From Eutreptiella sp. 'Long Island Sound 2002' (taxonomy: Eukaryota; Protista; Euglenida), in contig OZ038379.1 in assembly GCA_964036045.1 (NCBI GenBank), positions 26,474,001-26,538,000 of the forward strand: a stretch of 64,000 nucleotides of DNA, given 5' to 3'. The position numbers and the translations under genes are program-made. Positions 6,796-52,230 of this stretch are shown one piece after another; position 1 is the first letter of the stretch, and each line of letters begins with the position of its first letter. The notes below the pieces were generated by a model that saw only the letters and a list, made by a program, of their open reading frames with translations, was not told the DNA's origin and searched no databases.

Positions 6796-6882
6796 CCCTG
6801 CTGCTGCGCCGTCGCCCCTCGCAAGCGGCGCCGCGCACACAACTCCGCCGCCAGCACCCCCGCGGACGTCGCCGCTGGCTGG

Positions 6883-9243: not shown

Positions 9244-9379
9244 CGAGCCATCCACTGTGTTTTGGGGGACCTTGTCCCTGCTGATGCTTTTGCTCCTGAC
9301 GCCCCCCCCTCCCCCCCCCCTACCCCAGCCCCCCCCCCCCCCTTGGCGCCACAGCAGCCCGGGGAGCGAGCTAGCCCTA

Positions 9380-9430
9380 AACCCGGCTGCGTTGCTACAG
9401 TGTGGGGACGTCCACCCGCACCCGGGACCC
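9380..9430 (+). other. 2A-like motif 2 (AALLQCGDVHPHPG/P), directly N-terminal to the APE domain
   Basis: Variant of DxExNPGP, followed in frame by RRFIVSNATSL...ILAET (APE start). Confidence 0.65.
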
Positions 9431-10899: not shown

Positions 10900-12100
10900 G
10901 GGCTTTGCCCGCCGGTGGTCTTCCCGACCCGCAAGGACGGCACCCCCACCGCCGACGTGGCAGAGATGGATGCATTGGTCCGGCGGGCGTGGGCGCCCAT
11001 CAATCAGAAGTATGGGCAGGAGCCGGAACCATGCCCGGAGGAATTCCTCAGGGCATACGGCCGCCACATACGGCGCGTACCCATGCTGCCCCAGCCGCTG
11101 ACGGGAGAACGCCTGCGCCGCACGGCCCGACGGATGAAGCCATCAGCGCTGGGGCTAGATGGCTGAAGCCTAGGGGACCTCAGAGCCCCCCCCCCCCCCC
11201 CCCGGCTACTAGACTGGCTGGCAGCGCTGCTCCGGCTAGTGGAGTCAAGGGGGCGCTGGCCAGCGAGGCTGGCGGAGGGGTACACGGCGCTGATACGCCG
11301 AAGGATGGCCCCCTTGGGCGCTAAACACCCGCCCGCTGATGGTACTGTCTGCAGTGTACCGTCTGTGGGCAGGGCTGCGCCTAGAGGAGGTCATCCTCTG
11401 GCAAGAGTCCTTGGCCCACCCCCTGGCCTTCGGCTTCCGCCCCAACCGGGGCTTGCTGGACGGGGCGGCGGTCACACAGCTCCTGCTAGAGCTCTGCCGC
11501 CTCCGCGGGTGGGTGGTAGTGGGGATGAGCATCAACTACAAAAAGTGTTTCGATCTCACCCCCCACGCCATCGTGCTAAGGGTGGCGGCGGAGCTCGGCC
11601 TAGCGCCGGACATCTGCAGGGCGATAGGGGCCATGTACCGGCAGCTCCGCCGGTCTTTTAAGATCGCGGGCTGCCTAGGGCTCTGGTGGCAAGCCACCAA
11701 TGGGATATTGCGGGCATGTCCCCTATGAGTGATCCTCGTTAATGTCCTAATGGGGATCTGGAAGGAGGAAATAGACTCCCTCCGACAGCAGGTCTACACC
11801 TGGACACGGGCACTGCCGCCGGCACGGTGGTTGCTGCCCACAGCCAACCCGGAGGAGCCCCCGGAAGTGGTCCTTTGGGACGCCGGCGGAGGGTATGCCG
11901 CGGTGGGGGCCTAGGGCTATGCCGATGACACCGAAGCCGTGACACCGGGAATGGGCCCGCTGCAGCAGACAATCCCGGCGACGGAGGGGAGCTCCGGCTA
12001 ATGGGGCAATGTGTGAGCGTGGCCAAGTCCACGTCGTTCTTGGAGGGATCGGACCACCCCGCCCCGCTGCTCCTGCTGGGGACCCCCATCCCCTGGTCAT
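10900..12100 (+). pseudogene. Reverse transcriptase domain of LINE ORF2
   Basis: Motifs ALGLDG, VLSAVYRLWAGLRL, AFGFRPNR, INYKKCFD, NGILRACPL and GYADD (11918-11929); stops and frameshifts present. Confidence 0.9.
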
Positions 12101-12584
12101 CGGAGTTCAAGCCACTGGGGGTGGGCATACGGATTGGACGCCGGCGGGGGCCGGGCCAACGCTGGAGGGCCGCATGGACTCCATCGGAGAGGTTCTGCTC
12201 CGGACGCCACACCTCCACACGTTCCAACGCTGGGCCACAGCCACGGCCGTAAAAGCGCTGCCCATGGCACTACACGGCGTGGCCCTGGCGGATGTCGAGC
12301 CCAGCCGGCTGTTGCGCCTGGAGTCCCGGGTCCTATGGGCAATCTGGGGCCCCACGCGCACGGCACTGGCAAAGGAGGTGATCTTCTGCCTCTTGACGCC
12401 GGGGCACCGCACGTCGCCCGTCATGTGCACACGATATGAGCGATTGGTGTGGCTGGCGCGCACGGCGCGGGAGGCGGGGGCAGCACAATGCCTGCTCCAG
12501 GCCATCTAGGAGGCTAGGCAAGCGCCCCCGCGCACAGGGCTAGCCGGACGCACGCTATGGACGGCGCGGGAGCAGGGATGGCGG

Positions 12585-13033
12585 CAAGCATGTGCGGTCT
12601 CTAGGCAAATTTTCTTGTGCGGCAGCATGTTGTGGCATGCTGCGGCATGCTTCTACCTGCACATGTGGGTACCTACGCTTTTGTGGAAAATTGAGCTCAC
12701 ATGCAAGAGACAACATGCACAACACTGTTGGGCCAAATTAATCACTTTCATCATCCGGATCGTCTGTGGTGGGTTTGTTGACATACATCATAGCCAAATG
12801 GCACAAAGTGTTGTTCCCCATATGCAAACGGTCCTTTGTCTGGATGTGGCCCATCAAACTGAACGTTCGCTCAATATGGCAAGCAGAGCGAGGTCTTTGA
12901 ACAAAGAAAACAGCACATGAACTCAAAAAAATGGGTGCTGCGGCATGCTGCGGCATGCTTCAAAACCCCCATGTGCAGCTCCAAAAAACGGGTGTTGCGG
13001 CATGTTGCGGCATGTTGCGGCTGCACATGCTTG
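12585..13033 (-). mobile_element. Non-autonomous hAT derivative (449 bp) inserted in the LINE
   Basis: Perfect 11-bp TIR caagcatgtgc/gcacatgcttg. 8-bp TSD gatggcgg/gatggcag. Internal SACHIERTFSLMGHIQTKDRLHM is a hAT dimerisation motif. Subterminal catg(c/t)tgcggcatg repeats. Removing it restores the LINE frame EQGWRPVEGWWRW. Confidence 0.92.
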
Positions 13034-13199
13034 GATGGCAGCCGGTGGAGGGTTGGTGGCGGTGGAGCGTGCCGGGACAGGCGTCCCCACTGTGCCTGCA
13101 GCCGGTATGGACGGAAGTCAGGCACCCACCGGGAGTGTCTCCGGCACCACTCGCTCTGGGGGCTCGAGACCCGACGGCCGCGGATGTTCGGAGGCCTGA

Positions 13200-14260
13200 G
13201 AGGCGGGCTGGACTGTGAGGCCTACCGCCAAGGGCTGGCGGTGGCGCGCACGGAGCTAGAGGCGGCCCTACTGCGGGCGCTGGTGGCGGGCGCAACGTGG
13301 ACAGCGGAGAGAGTAGCCCGGCACCGGCTGCGGAACGGCACGGGATGCCCCCACGACGGCGCCTTGGAGGAGCACGAGGACGATGCGTTCTGGTCTTGCC
13401 CCGAGCGGCGTCTGGCCAAGGAGCCCTGGATTCAGTGGGTGGAACTCTCGGCCCACGCCCTCCGAGACTGGGGGCCCCAGCGACATGGCCGCGCTGCGTG
13501 CGGCGAGCAGGGCTCTTGCCTACAATCTTGACGAAGGATGCCGCAAGAGAGGGTGTGTTCGAGTTCGCCCGGCGACTGTATGGTATGTTCCTGGCAGTGC
13601 TGGCGGCGCGCGGAGGATGACGGGGAACGGCTCTTCCCCAGCAGAGAAGGTGTCCCGGCCATGCCAGACTAGCGCTACCGCGGGCACGCGATGTCGCTTC
13701 ATGACCGCGCGCATGTGCTGCGCCGGGCAGTGGACGTGCTACAGCCGCACCTACTGGCAGGGTCCCTACTACGGGGGGCGCCACTGGAGAGGTGTGCTTC
13801 CCTGGTACCCCTGGGAGGGCGACCGTGCATTGGGCTGAAAGCAAGGCCGTACTTTGCAGCCGAAGGGGCCATGAGGCACCAGCTGGAGCGACTCTCGCTG
13901 CATTGTATGGCGAAATGGCATGGGCGGTTGCGAGCACCAACGCGCTAGCGCAAGCCGACAACAATGTTCTTGCAGGATCACTTCCCAGTCCCAACGGATG
14001 GCCGCGAGCCGTTGAGGCTGGGGCAACCCCAGGCCACTGGGGCGAGGCAGAAGCTACCCCAGCTGATGGGCCCCCTGCCGCCGCCACCGAACCAACCCGC
14101 AGCCCGCATGCTCCCGGGAGTCCCGGACGGGTGGCGCTAGCCGCAGCAATTCCGGCACAGCCTGCTCTACTAGGCGGCGCGCCTGCAGTGGCGAGACGAC
14201 GCGGGCCAGGTGTCGTATGCGGAGCTCGCCCTGGACTACGAGGAGTTCGTGGGACCGGTG
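13200..14260 (+). pseudogene. LINE ORF2 C-terminus: degenerate CCHC knuckle plus two partial copies of a SYAELALD domain
   Basis: CPHDGALEEHEDDAFWSC, LYGMFLAVLAA, MSLHDRAHVL and LQWRDDAGQVSYAELALDYEEFVG; homologous to 42430-44526. Confidence 0.7.
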
Positions 14261-15570
14261 GGAGGCCTAACCCCCCCCCCCCTCCGCGGCCACCACGACC
14301 CGAGCTCCAGCCAGGGCCAGACTCCGACTCCGACTCGCAGCCCGCGTCACAGCCGGGTGGGCCTCGCCCAACACCATAGCACGATGCGCGGGCCGATTTA
14401 CCGGGGGCAAGATATGACCGCTGCACGGGGCGCCGGCGTGCAACTAGTGTCGGGTATGGAACCGGGGAGTCCACTTGTGCTGTGCCCGGGGCCATACGGG
14501 ACACGTGGTGGCCAGGGCACCAGCAGCCTGCCGGCCGGTGAGCGGAGGACGGCCGGTGTCGCACCCGGGGACGCGCAAACTCGCCCCCGTGGAGAGGCGG
14601 GCGGCAGCGGACTCTGTGCGCCGCTGGCTGGCGGCGGGCAGCGCAAACGGGGCGGCGGGACAGGCGCCGCGGACGGAGACGGGGGCGCTGGCGCAGCGGC
14701 CGAGGCCGGCACCAGAGACGGGAGAGGAGCCGCCGCAACGCCGGCCCTGCCAACGGCGGCCGGGGGTGACGGGGCGCTGGTCACGGGCGCAAGTGGCGGG
14801 GAGCGACGATGACGCCGAGGACGACAACGACTTCGACGGGAACGACAACGTGGACCGCGGCGCAGCCGGGGTCGCAACACGCCCGAGGCCCTGCAAGAGG
14901 GCCCGGGGGGAGGGGGAAGCCACAGCCCCCACCACAGCGCAAGCCACCCCCCCCCCCCCCGGGGTGCCAGGGAGGGCAGGGGGGAGAGGGGCCACGCCAC
15001 CCAGCAACGACAGGGCGGCCCAGCCCCCGGGCCGGCGCGACGCCGGCCCCGAGAGGACCGCGCAGGGCAGGGGGCGCCGGGGAGCCAGCCGTACCCCCAA
15101 ACCAGGGTACCCCAGCCTCCAGGGGGGACACAGACGAGGAACCAGGGGCTTCCCCCAGCCCGCAGCCCGGAGATCCCCCCCACTCCCCTCGGGGAGGGCG
15201 CCGCAGGGAGAGACAGGGGGACGACCGTACCCCCCCTACAGGGCACCCCACCCCCGGGAGGGGGCACAGCCGAGGAGCCGGGCGACCCCCCAAGCCCACA
15301 GCCCAGCCCCCCCCTGCGGGAAGGTGCAGCGGGCCACCAGCGGCGCAGGGCGACCGGTGGCGCCGCCAGCGAGAGATGGGGATGCAAGGGGGCCGGGGAG
15401 ACAGGTACCCCAGCCCCGAGGGAGGTCGCCGCCACTGCCGTGCGGGGGCATGTGCCACGGGAGGGCGTCAGAGGAGCTAACCTGAGCGCAGACGCAGGTC
15501 CGTCCTTCGCGCAGTGTACATAGTGGCTAACCCTCGACACGACAGCCAACCGGACAAATAAAGGATGATA

Positions 15571-15586
15571 TGTGGCCATCACAACG
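15571..15586 (+). repeat. 3' target-site duplication of the LINE
   Basis: Identical to 6723-6738. Confidence 0.92.
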
Positions 15587-16239
15587 TCCGGAACAAAGAA
15601 AAGACCAAATGAAGCAAACATGGACGACAAACACCACATCTGTTTGAGGCTCAACCTTTTCAAAACGAGTGGTGGGGGGGGGGGGTGCCATAAAGGCTTC
15701 AAAGAGTATGCCGGTTGGTACTTTCAGGTGCATGTACGTGTGCACCTTTTGAGGAGGGTATCCTCCACTTGTGGACATGTGGGTTGGTTGTCCCCCCAAT
15801 GGGGGTGGGGTGAGGATGGCGGGTTTAAAAAAAAAAAGCGAAAGGTGGGCAGCCTGTTGGGCTACCTAACAATGGGGGGGGGGGGGGTTGCTGAAGCCAG
15901 TTCAGGCTTGCTACTAAGACCTGGGAGCCCCGGTCTGCCCGGATAGACCCTGTCACTCTGCCCTGGTTTGCCTGGACACAGGTCCTGTGCTGCCCCCACC
16001 ACATGATTTTCATGAAGCAGAGACAGGGGCAGGGGGGGGGGGGGGGCTCTCCATACCTCCTTCACAGCGTCTAGGCAGACCCTGACACTCTGCTGGAGTA
16101 TGCCTGGAAACACCGCACGCCCCTACCCAGGTCTGCCCAATTCTGCCCGGATCGCGAACAAGCCTGAACCGGTTCACTCACGGATTTGTGGCCGACAAGG
16201 CAAAGGGGGGAATCAGGTTTGTAGTTGTGCGTTGCTTAC

Positions 16240-16487
16240 CTCTTGCACGTCCCCTCGATGCACGAGAACGGTACCCCGGCGGCCTCACAGGGCTTGTGCA
16301 GTGGCTGTCCGGGCTCCATTTCCGTGGCCTCATCATCTTCTTCATAGATGAGTTCACATTTGCCTGCCGCCGCCTGCGGCATCGGTGGTCCAGAAAACAG
16401 GCTGTACAGTGACCGTGCAGCCCCCAGCACTGCCTGGGCGGCGCTGAGCTCAGCGGAGGAGGTTGTGGTTAGAGACATTGTTGGGCC
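16240..16487 (-). CDS. fdx: [2Fe-2S] ferredoxin exon: N-terminal extension plus ...KCELIYEEDDEATEMEPGQPLHKPCEAAGVPFSCIEGTCK
   Basis: Pyrimidine-rich acceptor tttgtttcAG at 16489-16488 and strong donor GTAAGC at 16239. GVPFSCxEGxC is a ferredoxin signature. It is unresolved whether the ATG near the exon start is the initiator or upstream exons exist. Confidence 0.88.
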
Positions 16488-16999
16488 CTGAAACAAACCA
16501 AAGGAAGAGCATTCGAAGGGGTGCTGGTGGTTGGGAACCGAGATGATTCAGGTGATTCCCCAATCTCCAACCCCCAAAAGGAGAAGAATGGGCGAAGGTT
16601 GGCTGGCAGGACAGCAATCGGTATCCCCAAGATACCCCCCCCCAATCACACAAAGACCTTGATCTTCATGGATAACCACAAAGAACTGCCGAATTCAATG
16701 GTTCCAAAAATTGCGGAAACAACACATATTGTTGTTCTGACAAGGGCATTGTTCTCGCAAGGGTGGGGCTGTGGGGGTACGGCAGCAAACCATGAACCGC
16801 TGTCGGTTGACAGCCAGACCTCATCGTTTGACCATCGCCCAGCACCTGCACCACCTGGCGAATGCAGTCATCAGGAAGCAGAAACAAGACAACAATTGCC
16901 AGGTGTGGTGGACTCATCCCGCAGACACGAAAACAACACGCCACCCTCGGCAATCTGTCATCCCATGCACAAGCATCACACCCAGGCCTTTGCTTAGTG

Positions 17000-17475
17000 A
17001 TACTGGGGGGGGGGGGGGGGGTTCTTTGGCCCTCCCGGGATTTTGGCTGACCCACCCACCCACTCTCAGACCCACCCACACACCTGCTGGATACCCTGAG
17101 GGGGGGGGGGGGGTCACAGAGCAATTTCAGGTTGACCACTCCATAGCAGGAGCTAAGATTGCGCGCAGGAGGGTTTGAACTCACAACGTTGATTGGTGAG
17201 ACCTGTGCTATAACCACTGGGTCACTAACAGCCCCTGACGTTTCCTTCTTTGAGGACCATGTAGAAACTGAAGTGAAAGTGGTGACCATTACAAAAGTGT
17301 CACAATGTGCCTCGGCCCATGAACAATGTTGGCAGTCTACCAAGCTCAGCAACACCCACCCACCCGACAAAGCGGACACCCCCCCCTGGGGGGTACCTGC
17401 ATTTTTCCCAAAATTGGGGAAAACCCAGATTAACCCACCCACCCATCCTCAGACCCCCCCCCCCCCCCCGGGTAT
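17000..17475. mobile_element. Possible MITE with atac(t/c)+G-run inverted ends and an internal acccacccaccca..ctcagaccc duplication
   Basis: Short inverted termini; no clear TSD. Confidence 0.35.
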
Positions 17476-19288
17476 AGTAGCAACCAGCCACTAAGCAAAG
17501 GCCTGATCACACCCGTGGGTAGGAGGGACGGACATGAATTAATCCCCCCAAACACACACTGGATGTGCGGACCTGGGACCACTTGGTCATCAGCAGTGGC
17601 CCGAGAGCCGAACAAAACACTGTTGCCTTGGACGTACATGATGTTTGCAGCCCAGCAAAAAGACACATTGACCAGATGACTCGAGTGCATGAGATCAGAA
17701 CTTGCTGCCTGCATTCACTTTACTTCCAATAACACATGCACCTATGGCCATCAGTTGCAACAAAACATAATGGCACACCAAAATGCCCAGCAACGGGTCC
17801 CGCCCTCACTGCAAGCGGATTAGATAAATTACAAACGGGAGGGGGAGGGGGGTTGGGTTGGATTGGGACATGGCCTCTATTGGTAATCAAGGTCCCCATC
17901 CCTGCCAGACACGACTGACCTCAATGTCCGGTCTGAAGGCCTGCTGGACTGATGACAGTCCCCATGGGGTGTTTTCGCACAGCGCCTATCATTATGCTAA
18001 TTTTCCCATGTCCACCCTGAAAGCCAGCCACCTCTAGAACCATGCCCAGATTTCTGGTTTGACCATGGCTCCAGGGTCCATGTTTGAGCGTAATCGGCCT
18101 CTATGCACCCAGGGACGGATCTTTGGGGTCTCTCTCCCAACCTGCGGCCTTGGGAAGCAAGGCCAGCACCATGGGAAGCTCTGTGGACACTCTTGACCTC
18201 TGGGGCCACCTCGTCCATTGACAAGGGCCTACTTTTTGCACAGCGCGCGCATTAGTGCACGGTGCCCTCCCCCCCCCCGCCCTCGCCCAGTGCAAGCGAG
18301 CGGGAGATACTGCTGTGCCTGTGTGTGTCCTGGGAAGGGTGGACCATCCAGGGGACACTGGTCAGCTAGCCCACAGGCTCCAGCTGCTGATGTGTTGTGC
18401 TGCCTCCCTGCTGATCCTCTAAGGGCCATGGGCTGGCTGCCAGGAAGGGCAAGCTGGCCAAGGGCACTCCTTGATTGGCCCTTGAGGGTCACAGGTTGTG
18501 GCCCTCTAGGCTTGACTTCTACACTCCCAGGCATGCAGCACTGTTAGGGGTCCTTGGGACGTGCTTGGCACTGCCCTGTCCCAAGGACACACTGGAAGCC
18601 GTGGCTATTTCTGGTGGGGCACCCTGAGGGTAGACTCCCTGGGAGGGGGAGGGGGGAGGAAAGGGTCCAATGCTTTCTTGGCCTTCAAATGCATGCTCTG
18701 CTTCCATAGCCATAGGTATGGAAGCATAGACCTGGGTGCGTATGTCATTCGACCAGGACCAGGAGCATGCTCAAAAAATGCTGGTTGGGTACTGTGTAGT
18801 ACAACCAGCGTCCAGTGCCATGCCTTTGTATGATCCATTTCCTGCAATCCTCTGCTTCGTGCCTCACTTGTGCTGTTGCTGCAGTACTTAGGCGGCCCAA
18901 CCTGCCCCGTAAAATTTTGTGAAATGCGACATTGCAACTCGTATTTTATAATTTCCAGAAACGGTGCTTTACAGTCACAAACGTGGTGACTTGCCATTCG
19001 ATTAATGCATGAATGACAATTTGTGGTACTTAATCGCCAAAATTGAAAAAGACATCTTTTGGTCGAAATTTCGACTATTTTTGATTGCAGGCGATGTAAT
19101 CGGTTTGGGTCGTAGAGGCTAGCCACGGCCTGTACACTTTTATATGTTGCTGCCGGTGATGTGCATGCATGTTCATCATGCCTTTTCAACTTGCCATTAG
19201 GCGAAATTTCGACTATTGTCAGTATAAGTGTGGTTGTTGCCTACCACATCTTGCCACCAACAATCTCAATCCACGAATATTTGTTGTA

Positions 19289-27661: not shown

Positions 27662-29050
27662 ATGACGCTTGTGCGTTTGAGTGGAGCCAAGAGTTTGCGG
27701 GACTCTTTGGTCTCCCAACTCCTTGGTGAGTGGGTGGCTTCATCTCCCTTGGACCGGGCCCGATGGTCCGAGGCCACGGACGTTGGCTACCCCTCCCTTA
27801 TTCGTACTAAGCAAGTGGAGGCGGTGAAACAATACGCCTCCTACCTTTTTCCCGTGCCGGATTTTATTGGGCTCCTCATGGACCTCAATGTCACAAAGAC
27901 GGGGTTCCGCCACCTCTCCGAGTTCATGACCCGGCGAGGAATTGACTATACGGCCGCTACGGGCCACACTTTCCCGCGACCCATCCCAACACGGCAAGCC
28001 TTCTTGGACACGTGGAAGGATATGGCTAAGCCGCTAGAGTTCCGGCCCCCCGTGAACGTGGACGACCCACCCGCTAGTGGCCGCAGTTGGCCCGTGCACT
28101 CATGGGCCCGCTACATTCAATCGCGTCCACCACTAGTGGACACCATTGATTGGGACCGGCCTCTCACGTTTATTGTGCGCGGGGATGCGTGCCCGTGTGC
28201 CGGTGAGAGTTGGACCCAATTGTCTATTGGGCTCCTCAACCACGGCAAACAGGGCCGCACACCCGCCTACTTGTGGGTCATTGGGATGACCGTGTCGTGG
28301 TTGACTGGTGTTGGGTTTTCCTATGCATCCTCCATTGTTGCATGGCCATTGGGCGGCTGCAGGTCGCTTTTGTTGAGGCGCGCCTGGAGTCACTCCCGAA
28401 GGAAAATGCGGAGGCCGTGCAACGATTGTTGTACCGGGCACACACGGGGGTGAAGCTGGGTGCCACCACCGCACCCGATGGGGAGGAGGCCAGGGCCCTC
28501 TTCCTTGCATGTGAGGAGATGGGCCCACTATTGGCCTACGCGCCGGAGGACCCCGAATGGCAAGCCGTTGTTGCCATGAGGGATCTACGTCGGGACTTGT
28601 ACTGCGACACGCCCCCTCTCAATGACCTGGGGGCATCTGCTGTTGCGCAGCAGTACTGTGCACATTGCTACAAAGCCGCCTGCCAGTCCAACTACCTCTC
28701 TACTTGGAGGAGGATGTGACCACGGCGGTGGCTAATGCGGCACGTTTGTGGGTGGGGTTGGGGGCGGTGTGTGCGGATGTGGTAGAAAGCCTAAATGCCA
28801 TTTTAAAACGGGCCTACAACAATCACACAGCCCGGGGGGGGGGGGGAGGGATGCCGGGGGCCACATCCCTAGAAAGGGAGGCGGAGGTAGTTTTGCAAGT
28901 ATGGCAATGGTGGTTTCTGAAATCTGATCTACCCCTTAGGACCCTAGGAACCCCCCATGTGGCCCCATGTACAATGGCCACGCTCATGTCTAACCATAGC
29001 CCCCCACCCATGTCCCTTTCCCTTGCACCCCCAGCTCTTGTAAGCCCTAT
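27662..29050 (+). pseudogene. DDE transposase relic (region of the second Asp deleted, frameshifted)
   Basis: LTFIVRGDACP, FLCILHCCMAIGRL, SNYL..LEEDV and CADVVESLNAILKRAYNNHTARGGG match the motifs of the 47677-49763 protein. Confidence 0.85.
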
Positions 29051-29052
29051 CC

Positions 29053-31731
29053 ATGGACCCAGCCGCAATGGAGGCGTTGATGAACAAAATGTTCGAAAAG
29101 ATGACCGACAAAGTGGTATGTGCTTGTGTGTGCGTGTGTTTGCTTGCCCATGAACCGCATTTGTAGTCAGTAGTTTTCGTTTAAAATTTAACGGGGGCGT
29201 CGCTTTTCTTGGTTTAATTTTAACACCGGCGGTCGTTTAACATTTAAAATCTAAGCTAAAAATGAAGTGTTAAAAATTAAACGAAAAAATTTTAAACCCA
29301 GGTTAATTTTTCCATCTGCTTTCCCTTGCTGATGGAACAAGTGGAGGACCGCCTGCAGTAGGGTGGAGCACCCCCTGAGGGAGCAGTTCGAGCTCCTCCA
29401 GTAGCTGTAGCAGCTCCACCAGCTGCAAGCGGGCGTTCCCCCACCCCCGGAGGGGGAGGGGGAGGGGGGGGCGCGCCGTCCGCCGCCGCCTCCTTTGACG
29501 AGTGGCTCTGGATGAAGGAGGAGCGGTGGCGAGAGAAGGAGGAGAGAAGACGAGAGGAGGAGGAGAGGAGGAGGGCAAAGGAGGAGAGGAGGGCCAGCCA
29601 GTGACAGGGGGGTGGGGGGGTCGAGGTTAAGGCAGAGCAGGGGGAGGTGGTGGTGCCAGAGGATGGGGACGGGAAGGGGGAGGGGGATGAGGATGGGGAG
29701 GGCGATGAGGTCCGGGTGCAGCCCCCCCCCCACACACACACCCTGTTTTACCTCTTCCCGAGTTGCTGCAAAAGGCCCTCGGGAAAGCCTCAGCGGTCTG
29801 CCACAAGGCAGCCGCTGCCCCGTGGTTTGCCCAAGTCCTTGACCAGGGCTGTGGGCCAGACCAACCAATTTTTTCTGACCCCGGCAAGGCTCACTACACC
29901 CTGCGCTAGGTCATGCGCCGACTTTTCCGGTGCCTAATTAGGAAAAATGGGGAGGGCAAGGGGGAGTGGCGGAGGGATGCCGCCAAAGGGGGCGCCTGGC
30001 ACTAGCAGCCAGTGCCGGGCGGTCCCATGTCCCCTACCCGACAGGTAGCTTGGGGTCCCTAGGGGCCCTAAACCTGCTGGCTGACCCCCGGGGGGTCAGG
30101 TTTGGCACCGGCCACGACCTTGTGTGCCTGCAGCACTGGGTAGCCCTTGGCTGGTGCCAACAGTCGCGGCATGGCAAGTCGGTGCAGTTTGCATCCGTGT
30201 GGTTTGCCCTGCTGTCCCTACCCACCCCCCCCCCTAATCCCGCGGCGCAGCACACCTACGAAGGGCTGATGCCTGGGTTGCGGACAACCCGCGGCTTGGT
30301 TGCCGTCACTCAGACGGCACCTCCGGCGGCCACCACCGCCAACAACGCCAACGCGGCCGATCCCGTAGAGGCCCCCAGCCCTGCCTCGAGCTTCAAGCAG
30401 GCGATGGGGCTGCTGCATGCTCTTGGGTGCCCAGAACTTCAGAAGGTATGTGTGTGTATGCGTGTGTTTGTGTGTGTTCAATTTTCCGGACACTTCATTT
30501 AAAACTTTTGGTTTAATATTCAAAATTTCGATCGGCGCTTGAAAAATTAAAAATTAACGTTAAAAATTAAACGAAAAAATGTAGCAAAAGTCATCCGAAA
30601 AATTTAGTTTGTCCCGCGGACAACGGCCACCGCCTGTTTTGTTGCAGGTCAAGGACGTGGCGGTCTGCGGGGACGATGTGCGCCCCGTCCGTGTCGTTTG
30701 GAGCGACAAGGACGGGGAGCGGAGCGTGGGGTTGGGGGGGCTCCACGAGCTTCTCACCCAAGACCCCGCGCTTGGGCTGGCCGTGCTGTGCGGCTTGAAG
30801 GAGTGCGAGCACGGCCGCCAGTGCTCGGAGCTGTGGGGCCCCTCAAGGCCCTACAAGCCCACTTCGTGGGCACACTTGGGGGAGGTAGGGTGGTTGGGGT
30901 GTGAGGATGCGGGGCTTTGGTGGGGGATGGGAGGTGGGGAGGCAAGGCAGGTGAAGGAAGAAAGGGAGGGGGCAAGCACCACCACCACCTCCAACCCCCC
31001 CCTCCAAGCCTAAGCCCCCCCCCCCCCCCCCCAAGAAAGGCAAGGGGGGCAAAGCCCCCCCCCCCCCCCCCGCCCCCCGCAAAGAAGCGGAAGCGGTTCG
31101 AGTCGGACTCGGACGACGAGTCCGACAGCCCCGCCTCTTCCTCTTCGTTGTCCTCCGGCGAAGACACCCCCCCCCGGAATAAGAAACCCCCCCCCAAAGT
31201 CAAAGGCCGTCCCTGCCCCAAAAGAGAAGGGGCGGGAGAAGAAGGCGGAGGGGGGTGGGAAGGAAGCGGGGGGGGGGGAGGTGAAGAAGGAGGAAAGGGG
31301 GGTGGATTCCCGATCCCCTCGTGGGAACCCCCGCCCACGTCCCGTACGGGTGCGGGGTAGAGGTGGGCACCGTCACCGGTGTCCACACCCGCAAGAGCGG
31401 GGTTGTTTGGGTGAGATACCCAAACAACCCCAAGCTCTATGAAGTGGAGCGCCACCTCATCTTCGGCACGGCCGAAGCTGCGGAGGCGCACCTCCAAAAG
31501 GTGCGCAAGGGCAAGACACCCACCACCAACCCCCCCCCCCCCCAACGAAGCCGGCTAACCCCCCGACTAACCCCCAAGAAAACCCTCAACCCAACCCAAA
31601 TACCCCCACTAACCCACCTAATCCCCCAAGCGAAACCCAAGCTACCCCGGCATGATGGGACCCGGAAACGGGCTCCCGGGAGGTTTAACACGGCAACAAT
31701 GGCCGGAATGGCCAAGCACATCGAAGGCTAA
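29053..31731 (+). pseudogene. Spliced accessory gene of the transposon (acidic helix, Pro-rich linkers, small beta domains)
   Basis: Exon 29053-29115 (MDPAAMEALMNKMFEKMTDKV, GT donor; acceptor near 29331 appears mutated). Intron 30446-30647 is GT-AG, phase 0. VAVCGDDVRPVRVVWSD and LIFGTAEAAEAHL match the minus-strand copy at 45005-47795. Confidence 0.7.
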
Positions 31732-32357
31732 GGGGGATGTTCTATGTGTTTTTGTGCTTGTGTAGGGAGGTTTCATTTTTGGAAAGTTTGTTTAAATTTT
31801 GTTGGTTTAAATTTTAATCCCGGCGCCGCATAACATTTAAAATTTACAAATTTTAAACCAAAAATTAATCTCAAATTTTAAAGCCGAGAGCCATTTTAAT
31901 ATTTTTATACATCAAGACGGGTGACCCCCCCCCCCAAACCAAGGCGTAAAATGGTTGACAAACACACAAAGCACCCCATAGGGGTGAAAATTTTCCCAAG
32001 CGACACCCCTAAACCCCCGCAAAAAGTGCATACTTTGGTTTAATCAATTAATTTTTGGCCAAAAATATATTGGATTTAATTTGGGTCTCTAGGGATAGGC
32101 AATCCGTTTGTCTACAACATGTAACTGTTTGAATGTGCTGTCCTCCTGCTGTTTTCAGGCTAGACCGCAGGGCATTCACCGCAGTACTAACCGCCTTAAA
32201 ACAGGGGGTCTGACACCCGGTTCTGTTAGTTTCAAGTGCTCAAACATGAACTCGTTGAGCTTGAGCAGATATCTGACTACGTATGTGGTAAATCCTTGGC
32301 ACGGCAGTCCACCCCTCCTGTTCGGACAGACCGAACCAAACGCCTCCCATACACGAC

Positions 32358-42429: not shown

Positions 42430-44526
42430 CAGCGGCAATTGCGGTGCTATCTTGTGGCGAGCCGGCTGCGCTGACAGCCCCGCGCACAGCTGCCGCCCCC
42501 AAGGGGAGAAGGGACCAGCGGTAGTGGAGCAAGCACTGTACTTGTGCTCGCTCCCCAACGGGGAGCCGCATCCCTGACAGCTGGTGGTGGGGGGTTGCCA
42601 GCAATGTCCCCACAACGGCCTCAAGGCCGAGGGCCAACTCCGCCCACGACAATTCTCTCGGGCCTACTCCCAACGCCATTGCACAGACCCAGCAATTACG
42701 GCTTGCGCAAACTTGTGCACCAATCTCCAACCAGGCGGCACCCATAGTCAGAGGTTGCATCAGTGCCGGCTGCACACTGCCTCCGGCGGCAATCGGGGGC
42801 ATGCCCCGAGCACACGCAGGTAATGCCTGCACCCTATCCTGGCCGACCATTGCGGGGGTGGCACTGACTCCACGGCCGGGCGGGATTGCCCCAACCACAT
42901 GGACATGGCCGCTGCATCTGGCCAGGGCTTCTGCAGAAGGAATTTCCGGCCCGGCAACGGCGGCGAAGCGAGAGGAAGGAGCGGCGGCGACCCAACGCCT
43001 CCCCGTGGAGCAGCTAACCTGCCGCCAGGTGCTTGTCCACTAGGACGGCCGCCTTACGTAGGACCTGCACCCGTTCCCCCAACGGAACGGAGTTGGTGGT
43101 CCAGGGACACTATGAGCACCCGCCCCACAAAGGCTTCATAGTTGCAGGCAAGTTCCACCCACAAAACCTCACTTGGGCTGGGCGACCACGCCGAAGCACT
43201 GGCGCAACACACCAAGCCCAATACAAACTCCTGGGCCCATCGGCACCACGGGGGGCGCTCAGGCGCATGTAGGGCTGCACCCACTGCACATCCAGGGCGG
43301 GAAGAAAATTGCTTTGCCGGGGGGGGGGGGGGGGTGGCACGGAAGCCCGTTTGCCGAACCCCCCCCCCCTCCTTGGTCGCCATGCCGGGAGGGTGGTTTG
43401 GGCTGGCGCTGCCCTACCTGCCGTGCGGGGGGGGGGGGGGTCCGAAAGTGGCGCCTCGACGCAACATGCGAAGGGAAGAACGGGTGACCGTCCAAGGCCC
43501 CGTAAAGGAGCAACAACCACACGGATTTCCACCAAGGGGGGGGGGGGGCGACCCGAACATACATGGCTCAAAAGATCCTCACGTCGCGCTGATCATTTTG
43601 ACTTCACTTATGTGGGGGGCAATATTTTCATGAAAAAAAGTTTTCCGGGCCAAAATTTGTGTTCCGGCGCCTTTGGTGGCAACATCTGTCCTTACACAAA
43701 ACAAAGGGCCCGGCACGGAAGCCCATTTCTAGAACCTCCCCCCCCTCCTTCGCCGGGCGCCCATGACATCCCCCCCCCGCAAAGCAATTTTCCTGCCGCC
43801 CAAGGGCAGGGACCCACACAATTCCTGCCACGGATACATGGACTGGCAGGGGCGGCGGTCATGTGGGGAGAGTGCATCTCCCGCGCCCGTTGGGTTCAGT
43901 TGGCCTGCCGCTGTGTGCGCAGCGAGTACCGCTAGGTACATGCCATGCCGGTACAAGAAATCGTCCAAGCAAGCCCGCTCCATGCCCGCTAATGGGTGGA
44001 CGGGCATGAGGCCCGTGCAGCACATGCAAGCCAGTCATTGCTCTGGCGGGCCTAGCTGCGGCAGCTCATCCGGCGCATCACGCATCCACGGTAGGCACGC
44101 GGCCCACACAGCCTCCCACTCCAAGCAGTCCCATAGGATGTGCACCTCATCTTCGTGCGCCCTCCCCCAACAATAAGGGCATGAGGAGTGGTCCTACAGC
44201 TGGCGGCTGTGGACACGCACCGCAGTCAAGATCGCCCTAGCTAGTAGGCCGCACACGTTGGAAGCGTACAGCTCAGTAGAGGCAACTTGGAGCGTTGTGT
44301 GGCACGCCTCACTATCAACACCGTCGCCGTCCCGGGCCTCCCAGACGTCATGGGCGGCGCGCCTCTCGTTGTCGCACAACTTGGTAGCGCAAGCCATCAC
44401 ACAACCTGTGCTAGATGCGCTTGAGCGGCATTGTCCATAGGATTTGTTTGCCCAAGGGCAACCCAGACCCGAAGGCCTTCGTGCGTCATGAACCCAACAA
44501 GAACACAGCATGGAGTGCGCGCCGCA
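42430..44526 (-). mobile_element. 3' part of a second LINE of the 6739-15570 family (CCHC plus duplicated WAELAL domain)
   Basis: CPYCWGRAHEDEVHILWDC, HGMYLAVLAA, EVLWVELACNYEAFVG and ELSWAELALGLEAVVG. Confidence 0.8.
43295..43801. mobile_element. MITE (~507 bp) inserted in the second LINE
   Basis: TIR gggcgg(g/c)a(a/g)gaaaattgctttgc. Removing it joins the LINE reading GSLPL-DVQWVQPY. Confidence 0.75.
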
Positions 44527-45004
44527 CCCTTGGTACACGCTAGAATACCCAATCTCGTTCTAGCCTAGAACAGGCTAGAGAGGCTAGAACGAAAAAAAGA
44601 GGGGGATACCCCCCCCCGCAGGGGGGGGGGGGATGAGGTGTCCAACCTGGACCCCCCTATCCATACTCGGGGGCCCATACTTTTTTTTTCACAATTTCTT
44701 TGTTTTCACCTGATTTTGGAGTCCAAAAATTTTTCGTTCTAGCGGCGTTCTAGCGACGTTCTAGCGAGCGTTCTAGAACGCCGCTAGAACGCCGCTAGAA
44801 CGGTTTGCTAGAACGCCGCTAGAACGATATATATGAATGCTCTGCCACTCCTCAAAGAGAAGCTGCCCCGGCTACCATGGCTAGCCGTGGCCAATCACAG
44901 GGTCCCGATGCTGGACCCGACTCACGGAGCGCCAGGTTCCCCCCCCCCACCCCCCCGGTTAGCCCGGTTAGCCCCCCACCGCACCCCATAGGTCACTTGG
45001 AAGG

Positions 45005-45834
45005 TCACTTGGCGGGCCGGCGCCGGGTCACGTGGTGGTGGGTTAGCCCGATTAGCCCGGTTAGCCCGATTAGCCCCCCTGCCCCCCCAAGCCCCCATTC
45101 GCGAGTCGCGACACGCAGGTTACCCCTCCTGCGTGGTGGGGGGTTGCCGGGGCTCATCCTTGCTCCCGGCACCCCCCTTCTCACCCCCACCCCCGTGTCC
45201 CCTTCCTTCTCACCCCCCTTGTCACCCCCCGCCTCAACCCCCTTGTCACCCCCCTCCCCCTTGTCACCACCCTCGTCCCCCTCGTCGTCCCCGTCATCCC
45301 CGTCGTCCCCGTCGTCCCCGGCCTCCAAGGCTTCCCGGAGGTGGGCCTCCGCCTCCTCCCGGGTGAGGAAGAGGAGGTCCCCCGCCACCCGGAAGGTGCC
45401 CCCCTCTTTCTCCTGCTTCCTCTTCTTCCCCTTCTTCCCCTTCTTCCCCCCCTCCCCCTCCCCATTGGACCCCTGCGACACCACCCACCACTCCCCCGGG
45501 TCCAACTCCTCATCCCAATCCCCCAACACCGTCACTTGGCTGACGGTCCCCCCATTGCCCCCCTCCGCCCAAGGGACATACCGGGTGTCCCCCACGCCCG
45601 GCACATTCCCATATGGGTCCCGGCCCCTTTCTTGCATAGGGGGGGGCTGGGGTTTGGGGGGGGGGGTGGCTTTGCCCTTGCGCTTGGTCTGCGGCTTGGG
45701 CTTGGGCTTGGGCTTGGTGGGGGGGGTGCCTCTTCTTCGTCGCTACTCTCGAAGTGGCGGGGATTTTTCTTGGGGGCCTTGGGGGGGGGGTTTGGGGGCC
45801 TTGGGGGGGGGGTGTCTTCCCCCCCCGCTGCTGG

Positions 45835-45867
<33 letters not shown>

Positions 45868-47795
45868 CATCCCCCCCCGGTCCTGCAACCTGGCCCAGCC
45901 CTTGCGCTGCGGGTCCATGCCCCCCGCACTCCTGCCCGCTTCCCACCTACCCAAACCCTCCAGCACCGAGAGGGCCAAATTGGGGTTCGTCCCCAACATC
46001 CGGCTCAACTCGGTGACCCCCACGAGGCGCGTCCGCCCTCCACCATCGCGCCACTCCACGCGCACCCCGCGGGGGTCGCCTCCACACGTCTGCACGCTGA
46101 CAACCTAAAGAGACAAACAAAATGCAGGTGCGTTCTAGCGGCGTTCTAGGCATGTGTTCTAGCGGCGTTCTAGCGACGTTCTAGCGGCGGCGGTAAGGCG
46201 GTGGCTAGATCAGCGCTAGAACGGTTCGCTAGATCAACGCTAGAACGCAATTGACATACCGTGCCTTGGCGGCCCAGGGCGGGGAAGATGGCCCCCAGTG
46301 CCTTGGCGAAGGCGTCCGCGGGGTTGGGGGGGTGCGGCTGCGGGGGGCCGCCACCGGGGGCTGCGGCGGGCTTGGGCTTGAGCTTGGGCCGGGTGGCGAT
46401 GCCGTGCACCAAGCCGGCATACACCCCCTGGTTCGCCGCCTCGGGGCTGAAACCCCCGAAGTCCAGCGGCGCCGACCAGGTCGGCGTCCACACCCAGGCC
46501 TTCCCCACCCACTCCACCCCCCCCAAGCCCAGCCCCTGCCAGCAGTGGGCGACGAATCGCTAGTGGGTGCCCCCCCCCCCTTTTTCCGCTTGGGGGTGAA
46601 GATGTTGGTTTGCGCCAACTCAGACATCTTCACCCCCCTTTCGGGGGGGGGGGGCCACCTCCCCCCACCGCTTGTTCCCCTGCCCCGGCAACTCACGTTG
46701 CCACCCCCATGACCCCTCGACCACCCCCAGGCGCAGGGGCTTGTCCAGGTGGACAACCCCCCCCCCCCCCCCCCCGTCCACCCATACCCACCGCCCCGCC
46801 CCCAACAGCCGGTGGTGCACCCGCACCAACAAAAACCGGAGAGTCCATACCGGACGCTCCGGGGCGACGAGGAGGGGGTGTCCATGTTTGGGGGGTGGGG
46901 GCCAGCCAGGACTGCGGGGTCCCATGGCAAGTCCTGGAGGGCCCACGCAGCCCTCGACCCCATCAACCCCCTGAGCCAGTCGCCCCCCCCCCCCCCCCCC
47001 CCCCCCCCCCCGCCGGCGCCGCCTCCACCACCTTGGTCTCCTCCTCCTCATCCTTCACGCTCGCCTCCTCCTCCATCTCGCCATGCACGTCCACCTCCAC
47101 CACCTCATCCATCTCCTCGTCCTTCACCCTCGCCACCACCGCCGCCAACTGCCTCTCGCACTGCTCACCGCCCGGTCGAACCCCTCCACCGCTGCCGCCT
47201 TCTCGGCCACCTTCGCCTTCGCCTTGCGAAGGTTGGCCTCCGCCCACTCCACCCCTTCCTCCTCCGCTCCATCCTCCATGAGGCTCCGCAATTTTACCTC
47301 CCAGGCCGAGACTTTCGTCTCCGCCCGGGTCTTGGCCGCCCTGGAGGCGGCGCGGGATTCCAAGAACCCTTTGAGCTCTCCCCACGCCGCCTCCACCTCT
47401 GCCGGTTCCTCCAACGCCGCCGCCCCCTTCCGGGCTACCAATGGGGGAGGGGGTGGCGACGGTGGACGATGGGCTTGGGGTTGGGGCTTGGGCTTGGGCT
47501 TGGGCTTGGCGAGGGGGGCTTTGGGGTGCGGGGCCTGCTCGGCCTTCGGCTCCTCCGCCGCACGCCTGTCCGCCTCTAGGATTTGCGCAATCAGCGCCTG
47601 GGTCGCTGCGTTCTGTAGCACAAGAGCGTTCTAGCGGCGTTCTAGGCATCTATTCTAGCGGCGTTCTAGCGACAGTCTAGCGGCCGATCGTGCTGCCTAG
47701 ATCAAGACTAGAACGATTCCCTAGATCACCGCTAGAACGCACAGCACGAAATATACCTGCCTCACCAGCTCGTCCAACTGCTCCCGCGTAGCCAT
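45005..47795 (-). pseudogene. Spliced accessory gene of the transposon (frameshifts, several at homopolymer runs)
   Basis: Exons 47795-47757 (MATREQLDELVRQ), 47612-46260 and 46104-45005. Both introns are GT-AG, phase 0, at positions matching the 29053-31731 homolog. Confidence 0.72.
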
Positions 47796-49763
47796 CTTGG
47801 ATTGCAAAAGTCTGGTTACGGGAAGCCTGCATGTGACCCTGGCCCCTCCTTACCTCCATGGCATCCCTGCCCGAGCATGGCACTGGCAACCGTGGCCCCC
47901 CATGCACAACCCACGACACGTCAAAGTACGCAAACAACCATGTCATGCACTGTGCTTGCACATTGGCCTCCCTGTGGATGGCCGACAATTGACGACCCAA
48001 CACCTCGTCCACCCCCTCCACCCAACAGCCCCCCCCCCCCCCCCCCCCCCGGTTGCTGTGCTCGTTGTGACCATTTTTCAGAAAGCGGTCAATGCTTTCC
48101 GAAATGTCACCGGAGAACATAGCCAGGCCAAAAGGCTTAATGTTCTGCAACATGGTATCTACATCCTGCTCAAGGCTTAGTAGATACCATGATGCTGTTC
48201 CAGCAGCGCAGTGTCGCCGGAAATCGCGCGCAACAGCAGCACAATTCAAAGGGTTAGGGCCCTGATATGTACAATAGAGGGCCTGCAACGGGTCCCACAT
48301 GTTCGCGATGGCCTTGTACTTGGCCGTGCTTGGCCTAATGCCGAGGCACTTAGCAATATCCGGCCATGCGTCAAAAAAATTGGCCGTCTCCTCCCCATTC
48401 GGGGATGCTGACCCATAAACGCTCCAACCTGCACGCCTCTCCGACAGGAGAACTTGCAGGTCTCGACGGAGCGCAGGGGTGACCAACCTAGCCTCCCGAT
48501 CGAGAAACTCCCCCAACAAGCGGCCCATGGCCATTGTCAGGTGCAAAATGCACAAGACGAGCCAGGGACGTGGCAATTTCAAAATGGGCTGCGTACTGCA
48601 GCCGGCGGCTTGCAAGGATGGCGTCCCAAGGAGGAAGGCCGTGTAGTTGGCCTCATCACCCTCCATGGTCCGGGGGTTAGCACTACCCTCCCAAGTCTTC
48701 GTTGGGGCATTCCATATGCCCTCATTGAACATGGAGCCCACTTGGGGGCATGTGGACACCCCGATCACCCGTCGCGTCCACGGTTCATCCCCCCCGAGGA
48801 TCACCTTTGCCTCCTCCTTGGAGGCCCCCCATTGGACCAGCCCCGTGTCGATGATCTCTTGAACCACCTAAACACGAAACATGGGGGGTGGTTAATTTCG
48901 TTCTAGTCTAGTCCAATCTAGCGTCTAGCGAGCGGTGTTTGAGGCCCACTAGATCAAAACTAGAACGAGTGAAAGGCACTAGGTGAGAGGACTACCTCCC
49001 AATTGCTCTTCCACAACGTCCCAAGGGTCTCCATGGCCTTGTCATCGCAATTGGCCATGCTCAACATCCAAAGGCCCGCTGGGGAGCGGGCTAAGCGCTC
49101 GAAGTTGGCCAAGGAGATGGTGAGTTGGGTCCAATTGCCCCCGGCCACGGGGTAGGCATCTCCCCGGACGATGAACGTCAACGGGAAGGTGCGGTTGATT
49201 GACCGCACCAAGCCCGGCCGGGAGAGGATGTATGTGACCCATGAGGCGAAGGGCCATGAGATCCCGGTCGCCTTGGGCAACACCGTGGCAACGGGGTTGT
49301 CCAATTGCACCGGGGCGACCAACTCCTTCCAACGGGCTTGGAAAGCCCGCTCGGTACAAATTGGCCGGGAGTAGGGGCCACTAGGGACGGTGCGGTGATA
49401 CCCCAACTTACGGAGCGTGTAGAGCTCCAAGAGGGTCCTCCACGACGACTTGGGGGCCCTCATGTTGAGCACTAGTTCACACATGGCGGTGGGGGGAAGT
49501 AGGGAGGCGGCGTCTGCCTCAACGGCGGCCTTGCACGCCTCACCCGTGGTTTGGGTAGAAGTGGCGGAGTTCACATGTTGGACGGCGTTGTTGAAGTGCC
49601 GCCGTGCTAGGGGGCATGATAGCGCCCACGTGGCCAAGTAATGGCCCACCCGCTCATCCTTGAGGGTTGAGGCCCCACTCAACTCCCGTAGTGCCTTGGA
49701 CAAGAGGGAAGTATCCTTCCCGGGTGAGGAGGGAGCAAGGGGGGTAGTGGCGGGGCGTTTCAT
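47677..49763 (-). CDS. Apparently intact ~652-aa DDE transposase, two exons (49763-48996, 48867-47677)
   Basis: GT-AG phase-0 intron 48995-48868. Motifs FIVRGDAYP (D), LSMANCDDKAMETL, ILGGDEPWTRRVIG (D), LCILHLTMAMG (C2H/LH) and FGLAMFSGDISESIDRFLK (E). The start codon is my best guess. Confidence 0.85.
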
Positions 49764-49989
49764 TGCAAAGAAATGTGCAATATCTAAGCGGGAAAGAAGG
49801 AAGCATGGAACAATGCACGACGGATGATAGCAAGCAAGCATGCACGCACGCACGCACGGAACAATGAAGAAATTGGGATACGTTGGTAGACATTATATCG
49901 TTCTAGTATTGATCTAATCTAGGCTAGAACGTTCTAGCTAGAGCGTTCTAGGCTAGAATGAGATTGGGTTCTCTAGCGTGTACCAAGGG

Positions 49990-52230
49990 CACCACCCCTG
50001 TCTGTGACACCCTGTTCCCAAACCAGAGGCGCCCAGCTACCAAGCTACCCACGCTAGCCATAGCACCTGCTTCCAGCGCATGCGTATGACCGAGGAGATG
50101 TGTTGCCCCTTGGCCAAGACCGTGAAGCCGATCTCGTTGGCCCGAGAGAGGCATGTGGCCCCCTAGAGTGCCTGCGGCACCGCCGTCTCCAAGCCTCCAG
50201 TATTAGAGTCCCATCACCGGGGCCACTACCACCCTATGGAGCGCCAAGGGCGCGACTAGCATGTTGACCCCTAGCACGTGGTAGTCGAAGGTGGCAAGAT
50301 GTGGGAGGCAGTGAAGTGCAATGTAGCGGTGTCTAGGCGCTTGCCCAGCATCAGCCGCGTCACTTGGGATCTCTCTGTTGCAACATCGATACCCAATTGG
50401 CGAAAGCTATCCGCCACCGTTACGGGGTGGCCCCCGAAGGAGGACCGTTGGCGCGCCATCCTCAACCTGCACCCAGGAGCAGGCATTGCCCAGACGGATA
50501 TCCATTCCCCAACCGCGGCCACTCCTCCGTGGGAGGCCTGGTGTGCTACACCGCGGCGACCTCAAACACCAGAGCCTAGGTGTCGTCTACATACCCAGAG
50601 CACCCCAGTGCTGCATACCAAGCTCCTTGGTCGTCCGGCGGGTAGAGGTCTCCCTCCTCAAGCTCCTCGGGGTCCTCGTCGGCTGGGAATGGGGACAGGC
50701 CGGACGTCACGGCGCACATGTGTTGTCTTAGAGAATCGATGTCTCATTACTAGACAACGGTGAGGACTTGCACCAAGATGATGGACAAGAGGCAGCCACG
50801 GAGAATCCCATTGGTGACAAACTACCAGGACCCCAGGGCGCCGGCCACCTCGAACCCCCAGCAGAGCTACTCGCACATAGCTCAAAGCGCACGGCACGTG
50901 CCTGGGTGGGTGCCTAGCTCCAACGCCAGGGCAAGGACCACCTGCCGGGTGATGAAGATTGAAACACTTGACGCAATCAACGCTCATCCCTGCCACGGCC
51001 CCGCACTTCAGGCGGCAGAACTCCACCAGCACATGTGTCAACACCGCAACATCCATGGCGCTCTGCGCTTGCCGGAAGCCAAACGAATTGGGGTGCAGCC
51101 ACGCCTCCTACCACCAGATGGTGTTGAAAAGGCAATCCCGGCCACAGCCCGTACACCATGGACAGTACGGTGAGGGGGCGGGTATTGAGGGAGCTTGGCG
51201 GCCCCTCCTTGGGGATCACAGCCAAGTAGCCCTCCGCAAGGTGGGCCAGCCACTTCCAAAAACGCTCGAAGTCCCGGAGCAAGTCCGCCAACCAAGCTAG
51301 CGGCACATCTGATAGAGAGCGGAGGTCCAACGGGCTCCAACCATCCCACCCGAGTGCGGATAAGTGCTGGCGCGCCAGCTAGGGCCACAAACGGGAGCGC
51401 GTGCGCTGGGACACTAGCATGGGCACACACTGCACATGGTGTCCGTAGCTGCTTAGGAAAATTCCTATGCCCGGCTCTGCCACCTCCGCATAGATGCGGA
51501 TGATGTGGGGCTAGGCGTCCTCTAGGAGGCAATCTCGCGCAGGTTAGACGTGTCGGTGCTATCCAGCGGGATCCTGAAGGTAACCAGGGGCGCAAAAGCT
51601 TCATCCTTGAGCCACCGGTACATTGCTCCCTGGTCCGAGGACCACACCTCATCCAACCGGCCGTGCCAAGCCTTCAAGCACGCACCATATCTTGCCGTTA
51701 TCGCAATGTATCGCCAGGGCGGTGCACAGCTGCCAAAGGGAGTCCAAGGTGGCAACCCAATCAGGAGCCTCCCACCTGTGGGTGGGAGTAGTCGGGCCGG
51801 AGTGCTTGTAAGCGCGCATGCGGGTAAGCAGCATCTTCCATGCCTCTTGCACGCGCCATAGCGTCACTGCTGGCCTGGGCGCTGGGTGCTCGACCCTCCG
51901 AAGGACTTCGCGGAGGGACCCCTTGGCTGCCTAGATGCGTACCAAGGGGCACGTCACGCGGTCCCTAGTCATTCGCTTCTCCCGCGGGCAGAGGCGGACC
52001 TCACAACGTAGGCCGTCCATGCCATGCCCGCCTGGAGGGTGCAGCAGAGCCGCCAAGAGGGGCTCGCCAGCACACACGGAGCGGGGGTCGAGATCCGAGC
52101 ATGACAGCGCGAGCAAGGTCTCCTGTGCCACCAAGATCCGGAGGCCCCACATGGGATCCACGTCCTTGTTTGCCAACACCTCTTGCTAGCTGGGTGAGGG
52201 GCCTTGTTGCTTGGGCAATGAAGGGAGTAG
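49990..52230 (-). mobile_element. RT-containing 5' part of the second LINE (APE and ORF1 missing)
   Basis: WLAHLAEGYLAVIPKEG...RPLTVLSMVYGLW, AFGFR and VDCVKCFNL; collinear with 10300-12580. Confidence 0.85.

Follow-up and report, generated by a model that had tools for sequence, protein, structure and literature searches.

Within a 64,000-nucleotide stretch of the Eutreptiella sp. 'Long Island Sound 2002' assembly (GCA_964036045.1, contig OZ038379.1, positions 26,474,001 to 26,538,000; hereafter the window), DNA of a photosynthetic protist, we identified an element at window positions 44527-49989 that is a genuine DNA transposon of the cut-and-paste type and quite probably belongs to the CMCT clade, in a large family that no Pfam model recognises. 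This clade comprises EnSpm/CACTA, Mirage, Chapaev, Transib, Plavaka, ESTA, Lanisha and RAG1 (Kojima 2025, PMC12730594), and the element most likely represents an unnamed, unannotated lineage inside it rather than a wholly new kind of transposon. Its transposase is predicted to adopt a RAG1/Transib-like fold, and its ends combine a CCC terminus with a 2-bp target-site duplication (TSD).

The element is bounded by terminal inverted repeats (TIRs) of 52 nt each, whose two arms pair without gaps over that whole length at 88% complementarity, and its terminal 19-mer occurs only twice in the window, both times at an element end, where 0.01 matches would be expected by chance. A CA dinucleotide directly adjoins each TIR. 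We took nine additional copy-bearing loci, located via products of the first transposase exon, from the same ENA assembly, and found both element ends in four of them, flanked by AA/AA (L004), TC/TC (L006), TG/TG (L013) and TT/TT (L015). All five bounded copies—the window copy and these four—therefore carry a 2-bp flanking duplication, with no match at a third base in any of them; because this outcome has a chance probability of about 1e-6, we regard the 2-bp TSD as established. No target preference is visible among the dinucleotides of the five copies. Counting CA as part of the TIR was considered and rejected, since the dinucleotide is a direct rather than an inverted repeat and differs from copy to copy, which places it outside the TIR; CCC is the terminal consensus across copies. 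When the flanks are rejoined and compared by tblastx with a long interspersed nuclear element (LINE) at window 5500-17500, they align collinearly with it to either side of the junction, so the element appears to lie inside a decayed LINE, although open reading frames (ORFs) in the flanks have no Pfam match. The original prediction, made from the letters of the window, had described 45-bp TIRs starting with CCC, a CA duplication and an insertion into a LINE; the TIRs (52 nt here) and the CA duplication are confirmed and the LINE insertion is supported, and the length of the duplication, which it had proposed to check in further copies, is 2 bp in all four of those added here.

The products of the two transposase exons match 134 and 195 clusters at 90% identity (195 for exon 1), nearly all from one assembly, and a profile search of 1.84 billion representatives returned 664 clusters (50% identity) at E<=1e-3, 377 of which reach E<=1e-10. 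None of the ten family clusters that we looked up carries a name, and members are also present in metagenome and Logan contigs. The family shares a series of motifs—(I/V)V(R/K)GD..P..G..W, GGD.PW.RR..G(V/I)S, C(I/V)LH..MA.G(R/K)L, PDGEE, YL..L..D, FGLAMF..D..ES.N..LK and RGGG—with the second Asp conserved in 57/68 aligned sequences, the Glu in 63/79 and the C(2)H motif in 86/96-98. Given hundreds of copies that carry TIRs and TSDs, we rejected the readings as an ORF arising by chance and as a domesticated gene present only once.

The transposase gene is read here as two exons of 256 and 396 aa joined by splicing, as judged from the sequence, which together give an intact ORF of 652 aa and agree with the uninterrupted two-exon ORF of about 652 aa described originally. 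Because the RNase H core is divided between the two exons, we folded a contiguous homologue instead: P0257, a protein of 434 aa that is about 35% identical to the window protein and runs without interruption over the position of the intron. Its AlphaFold2 model, built with a 150-sequence alignment (predicted local distance difference test score, pLDDT, 82; predicted template modelling score 0.85), shows a beta1-beta2-beta3-alpha1-beta4 topology with D47 on strand 1, D128 just past strand 4 and E359 on a late helix, whereas a model of exon 2 alone (5 sequences) reached a pLDDT of 50 and was unusable.

In Foldseek searches of the PDB with the P0257 model, the first 43 matches are all RAG1 (best E 1e-9, template modelling score, TM, 0.46-0.57), with BbRAGL at E 5e-6, HzTransib at E 1e-4 and Hermes at E 5e-3 (TM 0.26). 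VIA-align against solved structures (including HzTransib 6pqn, mouse RAG1 6xnx and BbRAGL 6b40) gave Z scores of 18.8 for RAG1 (377 aa at 4.1 A), 16.6 for HzTransib, 16.2 for BbRAGL, 13.5 for the P element (292 residues), 8.2 for ISCth4 and 7.4 for Hermes (about 260 residues). Among Swiss-Prot models, P0257 residues 12-416 align to mouse RAG1 562-1019, and proteins derived from hAT are found there with E-values between 1e-4 and 1e-2. Based on these modelled structures, we take the RAG1/Transib-like fold of the transposase family to be real. One sequence profile points weakly the same way: searched against the PDB, a 42-sequence family profile (alignment A3) returned one relevant chain, amphioxus RAG1L (6b40_A), at a weak E of 0.0046, in an alignment that pairs CILH..G with DATH..G, YLL.LE.D with YLHKVIEHV, and D..ES.N..LK with GNEAGNKLFR, the helix bearing the catalytic Glu. 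In language-model features, RAG1 clusters are also nearest (0.94, with 180/256 features shared). The RAG1/Transib-like transposase of the original prediction is thus supported by the fold comparison and the weak RAG1L profile match, and the fold check that it had proposed returned an RNase H-like DDE core in the homologue with RAG1 as the best PDB match; of its five proposed motif pairs with RAG1, three (CILH, YLL.LE.D and D..ES.N..K) are aligned in the profile match.

The ranking within the PDB is nevertheless biased toward RAG1, since the structure of no CMC transposase has been solved. Among the predicted models of the ESM Atlas, a Transposase_21 cluster matches with a TM of 0.69 over 396 residues, which is as good as RAG1, and a Plavaka cluster with a TM of 0.55; among AlphaFold DB clusters, a DUF4218 protein (E 1e-7) ties with RAG1, both ranking below unnamed clusters. 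Since Transposase_21 models match equally well, the fold places the protein in the CMCT clade but does not separate Transib from CMC.

Several observations weigh against this placement. The structural model represents a homologue at about 35% identity and not the window protein itself. Pfam searches with each ORF piece and with 42 family members gave no consistent match even at E<=10, with the models for RAG1 domains, Transposase_21, DUF4218, hAT and MULE matching 0/42 members; the Plavaka model likewise had no sequence match to the family, and PDB sequences compared with single pieces (phmmer/hmmsearch) and with 5-sequence and 150-sequence profiles returned nothing. The C(2)C and H(3-4)H motifs are reported as common to all CMCT lineages (PMC12730594), yet in this family the positions equivalent to C(2)C read S..N (72/81 and 52/82), the position equivalent to H(3-4)H reads L..LE.D, and between D283 and E513 the window protein has neither a CxxC nor an Hx3-4H pair. 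The termini are CCC rather than the usual CA/CAC: across copies, we found neither CAC heptamer/nonamer-like nor CAC(TA) ends. The missing C(2)C, the missing H(3-4)H and the CCC ends are outside the known variation of the clade. Other conserved Cys/His residues do lie between the second Asp and the Glu (C190, C208, H211, C311 and H321 in P0257 numbering, alignment A4), and these might form a different metal site.

The remaining features fall within what the clade already contains. CMCT lineages have TSDs of 2-5 bp and termini that are mostly CA..TG, and HHpred searches with transposases of ESTA, which has TA TSDs, return RAG1 (PMC12730594), as solved structures do here; a 2026 preprint further describes relatives of Transib whose TSDs are 3 bp long or TA, and makes a case for both TSD length and TIR sequence being labile (10.64898/2026.08.26.747230). 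Because the clade already covers TSDs of 2-5 bp, the mixed signature of the element is less strange than first held: the CCC ends and the 2-bp TSD are real and the lineage is unnamed, but the combination of a RAG1-like transposase with such a TSD is part of known CMCT variation and does not mark a new kind of transposon. The element thus resembles the clade in its RAG1-like-fold DDE transposase, its TSD length and its TIR-bounded cut-and-paste structure, and differs from it in lacking both zinc motifs, in ending CCC...GGG instead of CA...TG, and in being recognised by no family model. PlavakaA and ESTA (2-bp or TA TSDs) share the 2-bp duplication and the RAG1-like transposase, but PlavakaA has TGT..ACA termini, the hosts are fungal and the zinc motifs are retained there; for Plavaka, the absent Pfam match and the weaker fold match add to the difference.

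Where in the clade the family belongs could be decided differently. One alternative is that it is a true member or a sister branch of the Transib superfamily whose stagger was shortened to 2 bp and whose zinc site was lost. We consider this unlikely, despite the fact that the only significant sequence-profile match is to amphioxus RAG1L, that the three highest structural Z scores (16-19, over the whole length of the fold) belong to RAG1, HzTransib and BbRAGL, that the DDE placement, the D/C(2)H motif and a Glu in an E(S/A)GNK-like helix are all shared, and that language-model comparison leads to RAG1 and to arthropod RAG1_RNase_H clusters rather than to Transposase_21; the reported Transib relatives with 3-bp and TA TSDs also speak for it. 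Against it stand the Pfam RAG1 domains without a match, a TSD of 2 bp in 5/5 copies and not 5 bp, and the absence of CAC heptamer/nonamer-like ends, of 12/23 asymmetry and of zinc ligands, in addition to the PDB bias, the equal match of Transposase_21 predicted models and the DUF4218 protein that is about level with RAG1 in AlphaFold DB. The second gene of the element has no kelch-repeat Pfam match, in contrast to the kelch repeats of RAG2, and the two-gene layout and subterminal repeats look more like CACTA.

That layout is also what speaks for a second alternative, which we find doubtful to the same degree: that the family is a divergent CMC proper, of EnSpm/Mirage type, and that its resemblance to RAG1 is a fold shared across the clade. 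The 2-bp duplication falls within the 2-4 bp of CMC and the short TSDs (2-3 bp) of En/Spm and Mirage; as in En/Spm, a short subterminal motif is clustered in many copies and in both orientations and the transposase is accompanied by a second gene on the same strand; and predicted Transposase_21 structures match as well as RAG1, with the DUF4218 protein among the AlphaFold DB matches. Yet neither Transposase_21 nor DUF4218 matches any of the 42 members by sequence, the C(2)C and H(3-4)H motifs and a CAC(TA) end are missing, with CCC in place of the CACTA terminus, the closest clusters in AlphaFold DB consist of unnamed proteins, not of annotated EnSpm, and in the window element the motif clusters also fill its own introns, unlike En/Spm and Mirage. 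A different superfamily with an insertion domain (P, Kolobok, hAT, MULE or Academ), matching RAG1 only through general fold similarity, is very improbable: the P element and Hermes do reach Z scores of 13.5 and 7.4, hAT-derived proteins appear among Swiss-Prot models and the C(2)H motif is common to those superfamilies, but RAG1 aligns over clearly more residues than P or Hermes with clearly higher Z scores and, compared with Hermes, a higher TM (0.52-0.57 against 0.26), and TSDs of 8 bp (hAT), 7-8 bp (P), 4 bp (Kolobok) and 8-10 bp (MULE) do not fit the 2 bp seen here; for Academ the comparison is of TSD length, 3-4 bp, which does not fit either. An unnamed lineage within the CMCT clade remains our preferred reading, and the features of the element are listed below on that basis.

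Table 1. Features of the element and its flanking duplication, in window coordinates.
Feature	Position	Strand	Remarks
Left TSD copy, CA	44525..44526	.	dinucleotide varies among other copies
Left TIR	44527..44578	+	begins CCCTTGGTACACGCTAGAA; first bases CCCTTGG
Left subterminal CTAGAACG clusters	44556-44591 and 44735-44826	.	
Gene 2, remainder	45005..47612	-	coiled-coil/KP-rich/acidic exon, then further exons; frameshifted in window copy
Gene 2, possible winged-helix piece	45532-46095	-	conserved in sister element
Gene 2, further motif-filled intron (predicted)	about 46128-46250	-	
Internal CTAGAACG clusters	46131-46247, 47627-47739, 48899-48967		in predicted introns
Gene 2, poly-G tract	46985-47012	-	28 nt in window copy
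Gene 2, intron 1 (predicted)	47613..47756	-	144 nt; dense in CTAGAACG motifs, inverted arrangement
Gene 2, first exon (predicted)	47757..47795	-	MATREQLDELVRQ, then GTATAT donor
Transposase exon 2 (predicted)	48867-47677	-	396 aa up to stop
Conserved RGGGG run	48028-48051	-	poly-C tract; exon 2 coding
E513 in ISESIDRFLK	48099-48097	-	codon; exon 2
C(2)H motif CILH	48552-48541	-	exon 2
D283 in GGD	48789-48787	-	codon; exon 2
Transposase intron (predicted)	48995-48868	-	128 nt, GTAGTC...TTTAG (GT..AG); two CTAGAACG motifs, inverted orientation
Transposase exon 1 (predicted)	49763-48996	-	256 aa; first catalytic Asp D202 in RGD, codon 49160-49158
Right subterminal CTAGAACG cluster	49899..49951	.	
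Right TIR	49938..49989	-	88% complementary to left arm; no 12/23-type length asymmetry within 52 nt
Right TSD copy, CA	49990..49991	.	

Within the transposase, the poly-C tract encodes a Gly run that is conserved family-wide (alignment A4) a few residues past the catalytic Glu motif; because the run is kept across the family, this homopolymer is coding and under constraint. The tail of exon 2 past about 47860 shows no conservation, and the final ~60 codons overlap the first exon of the second gene (gene 2) in a different frame, which leaves the true C-terminus of the transposase uncertain.

Gene 2 is where the element departs from the complete two-gene transposon originally described. Compared with three sibling copies, the window copy is missing 1 nt at about 47164/47165 and has a poly-G tract of 28 nt in place of about 11 nt, and each of these changes shifts the frame of gene 2, so the element is not fully intact; an assembly error at these sites, such as a long-read homopolymer error, is possible. 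In the siblings, it is the transposase exons that are broken; the window copy thus combines the best transposase with a damaged gene 2. No Pfam family matched gene 2, kelch repeats of the RAG2 type included. For the first 75 residues of the piece marked as possible winged-helix in Table 1, all language-model neighbours are winged-helix DNA-binding families, with low scores of 0.59-0.66, which we treat as a lead only.

A single short motif recurs throughout the element. All 28 exact copies of CTAGAACG in the window lie inside it, against 0.67 expected, and clusters of the motif in a minus-then-plus (palindromic) arrangement fill every predicted intron in addition to both subterminal regions, so the introns resemble miniature copies of the region at the ends of the element where binding is proposed. 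By analogy with known systems, CTAGAACG is probably a binding site for a protein encoded by the element, either the N-terminus of the transposase or the gene 2 product; the TnpA protein of En/Spm serves as a model for such putative end-motif binding by the latter. On the contig of P0257, where the RNase H core is not interrupted by the intron seen in the window element, clusters of a related motif (GTAGAACG/CGTTCTAC; L007 1-130 and 1576-1700) flank the intronless ORF and adjoin plausible splice sites, and this contig is present in five SRA runs. A word-indexed homology search with P0257 returned P0257 itself and one fragment, and P0395 (631 aa), a candidate for a full-length intronless protein, was rejected as its C-terminus reads into non-coding sequence.

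Other copies and a relative within the window illustrate the history of the family. The bounded copy in L015 (6788-8294) is a 1.5-kb internally deleted derivative with near-perfect TIRs and its TT duplication, which shows that non-autonomous derivatives of the family were mobilised. The copy in L013 is interrupted by about 3.6 kb (8535-12111) encoding a product with a weak piggyBac-type (DDE_Tnp_1_7) Pfam match; this is a nested insertion of a different DNA transposon. At window 27662-32094 lies a sister element, to which exon 1 of the transposase is 50% identical over 106 aa and with which parts of gene 2, including its C-terminal piece, are conserved. Only the 3' end of this sister element is visible (near 32070-32094; ...TTTGGGTCTCTAGGG), which has in common with the TIR of the window element both the CCC terminus and a TAGAGA(A)CCCAA box, and its repeated motif is AT-rich (TTAAAATT). 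A search for a TIR pair across 27662-32094 found none, and since no matching 5' TIR was found, the sister element is probably 5'-truncated.

Taken together with the known behaviour of RAG1, Transib and other enzymes of the same fold, these features suggest how the element may move. A transposase of RAG1/Transib architecture, whose RNase H-like core holds D202 on strand 1 and, past strand 4, D283, whose helical insertion domain contains the C(2)H motif, and whose E513 sits on the helix of the ES.N..LK motif, would bind the 52-nt TIRs and nick the DNA at the CCC boundary. The element would then be released as its flanks are closed into hairpins, the route taken by RAG, Transib and hAT, and its 3' ends would be joined to target DNA with a 2-nt stagger, which would produce the observed 2-bp duplication.

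A bolder version of this placement, which we regard as improbable, and more so than a position within Transib or within CMC proper, is that the family is a deep, zinc-less sister of Transib and RAG1 in photosynthetic protists and in marine or estuarine plankton, and that its own end motif builds all of its introns. If so, the ancestry of the RAG1 core would be traceable well outside animals and fungi, the zinc-braced insertion domain would be dispensable or replaced by another Cys/His site (C190, C208, H211, C311, H321), and DNA bound by a transposase would be linked to the creation of introns.

For the unnamed CMCT lineage that we favour, the current picture of the clade is not overturned, because the pairing of a short TSD with a RAG1-like transposase is already on record there. 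The finding extends the transposon clade ancestral to the V(D)J recombinase by a large and unannotated branch, which counts 664 clusters (50% identity) and lacks a Pfam model. It would offer a natural test of how stagger (2 vs 5 bp) and end sequence (CCC vs CAC) change on one catalytic scaffold, and of whether the zinc site thought universal in the CMCT clade is needed, with a practical gain for repeat annotation in algal genomes and plankton metagenomes.

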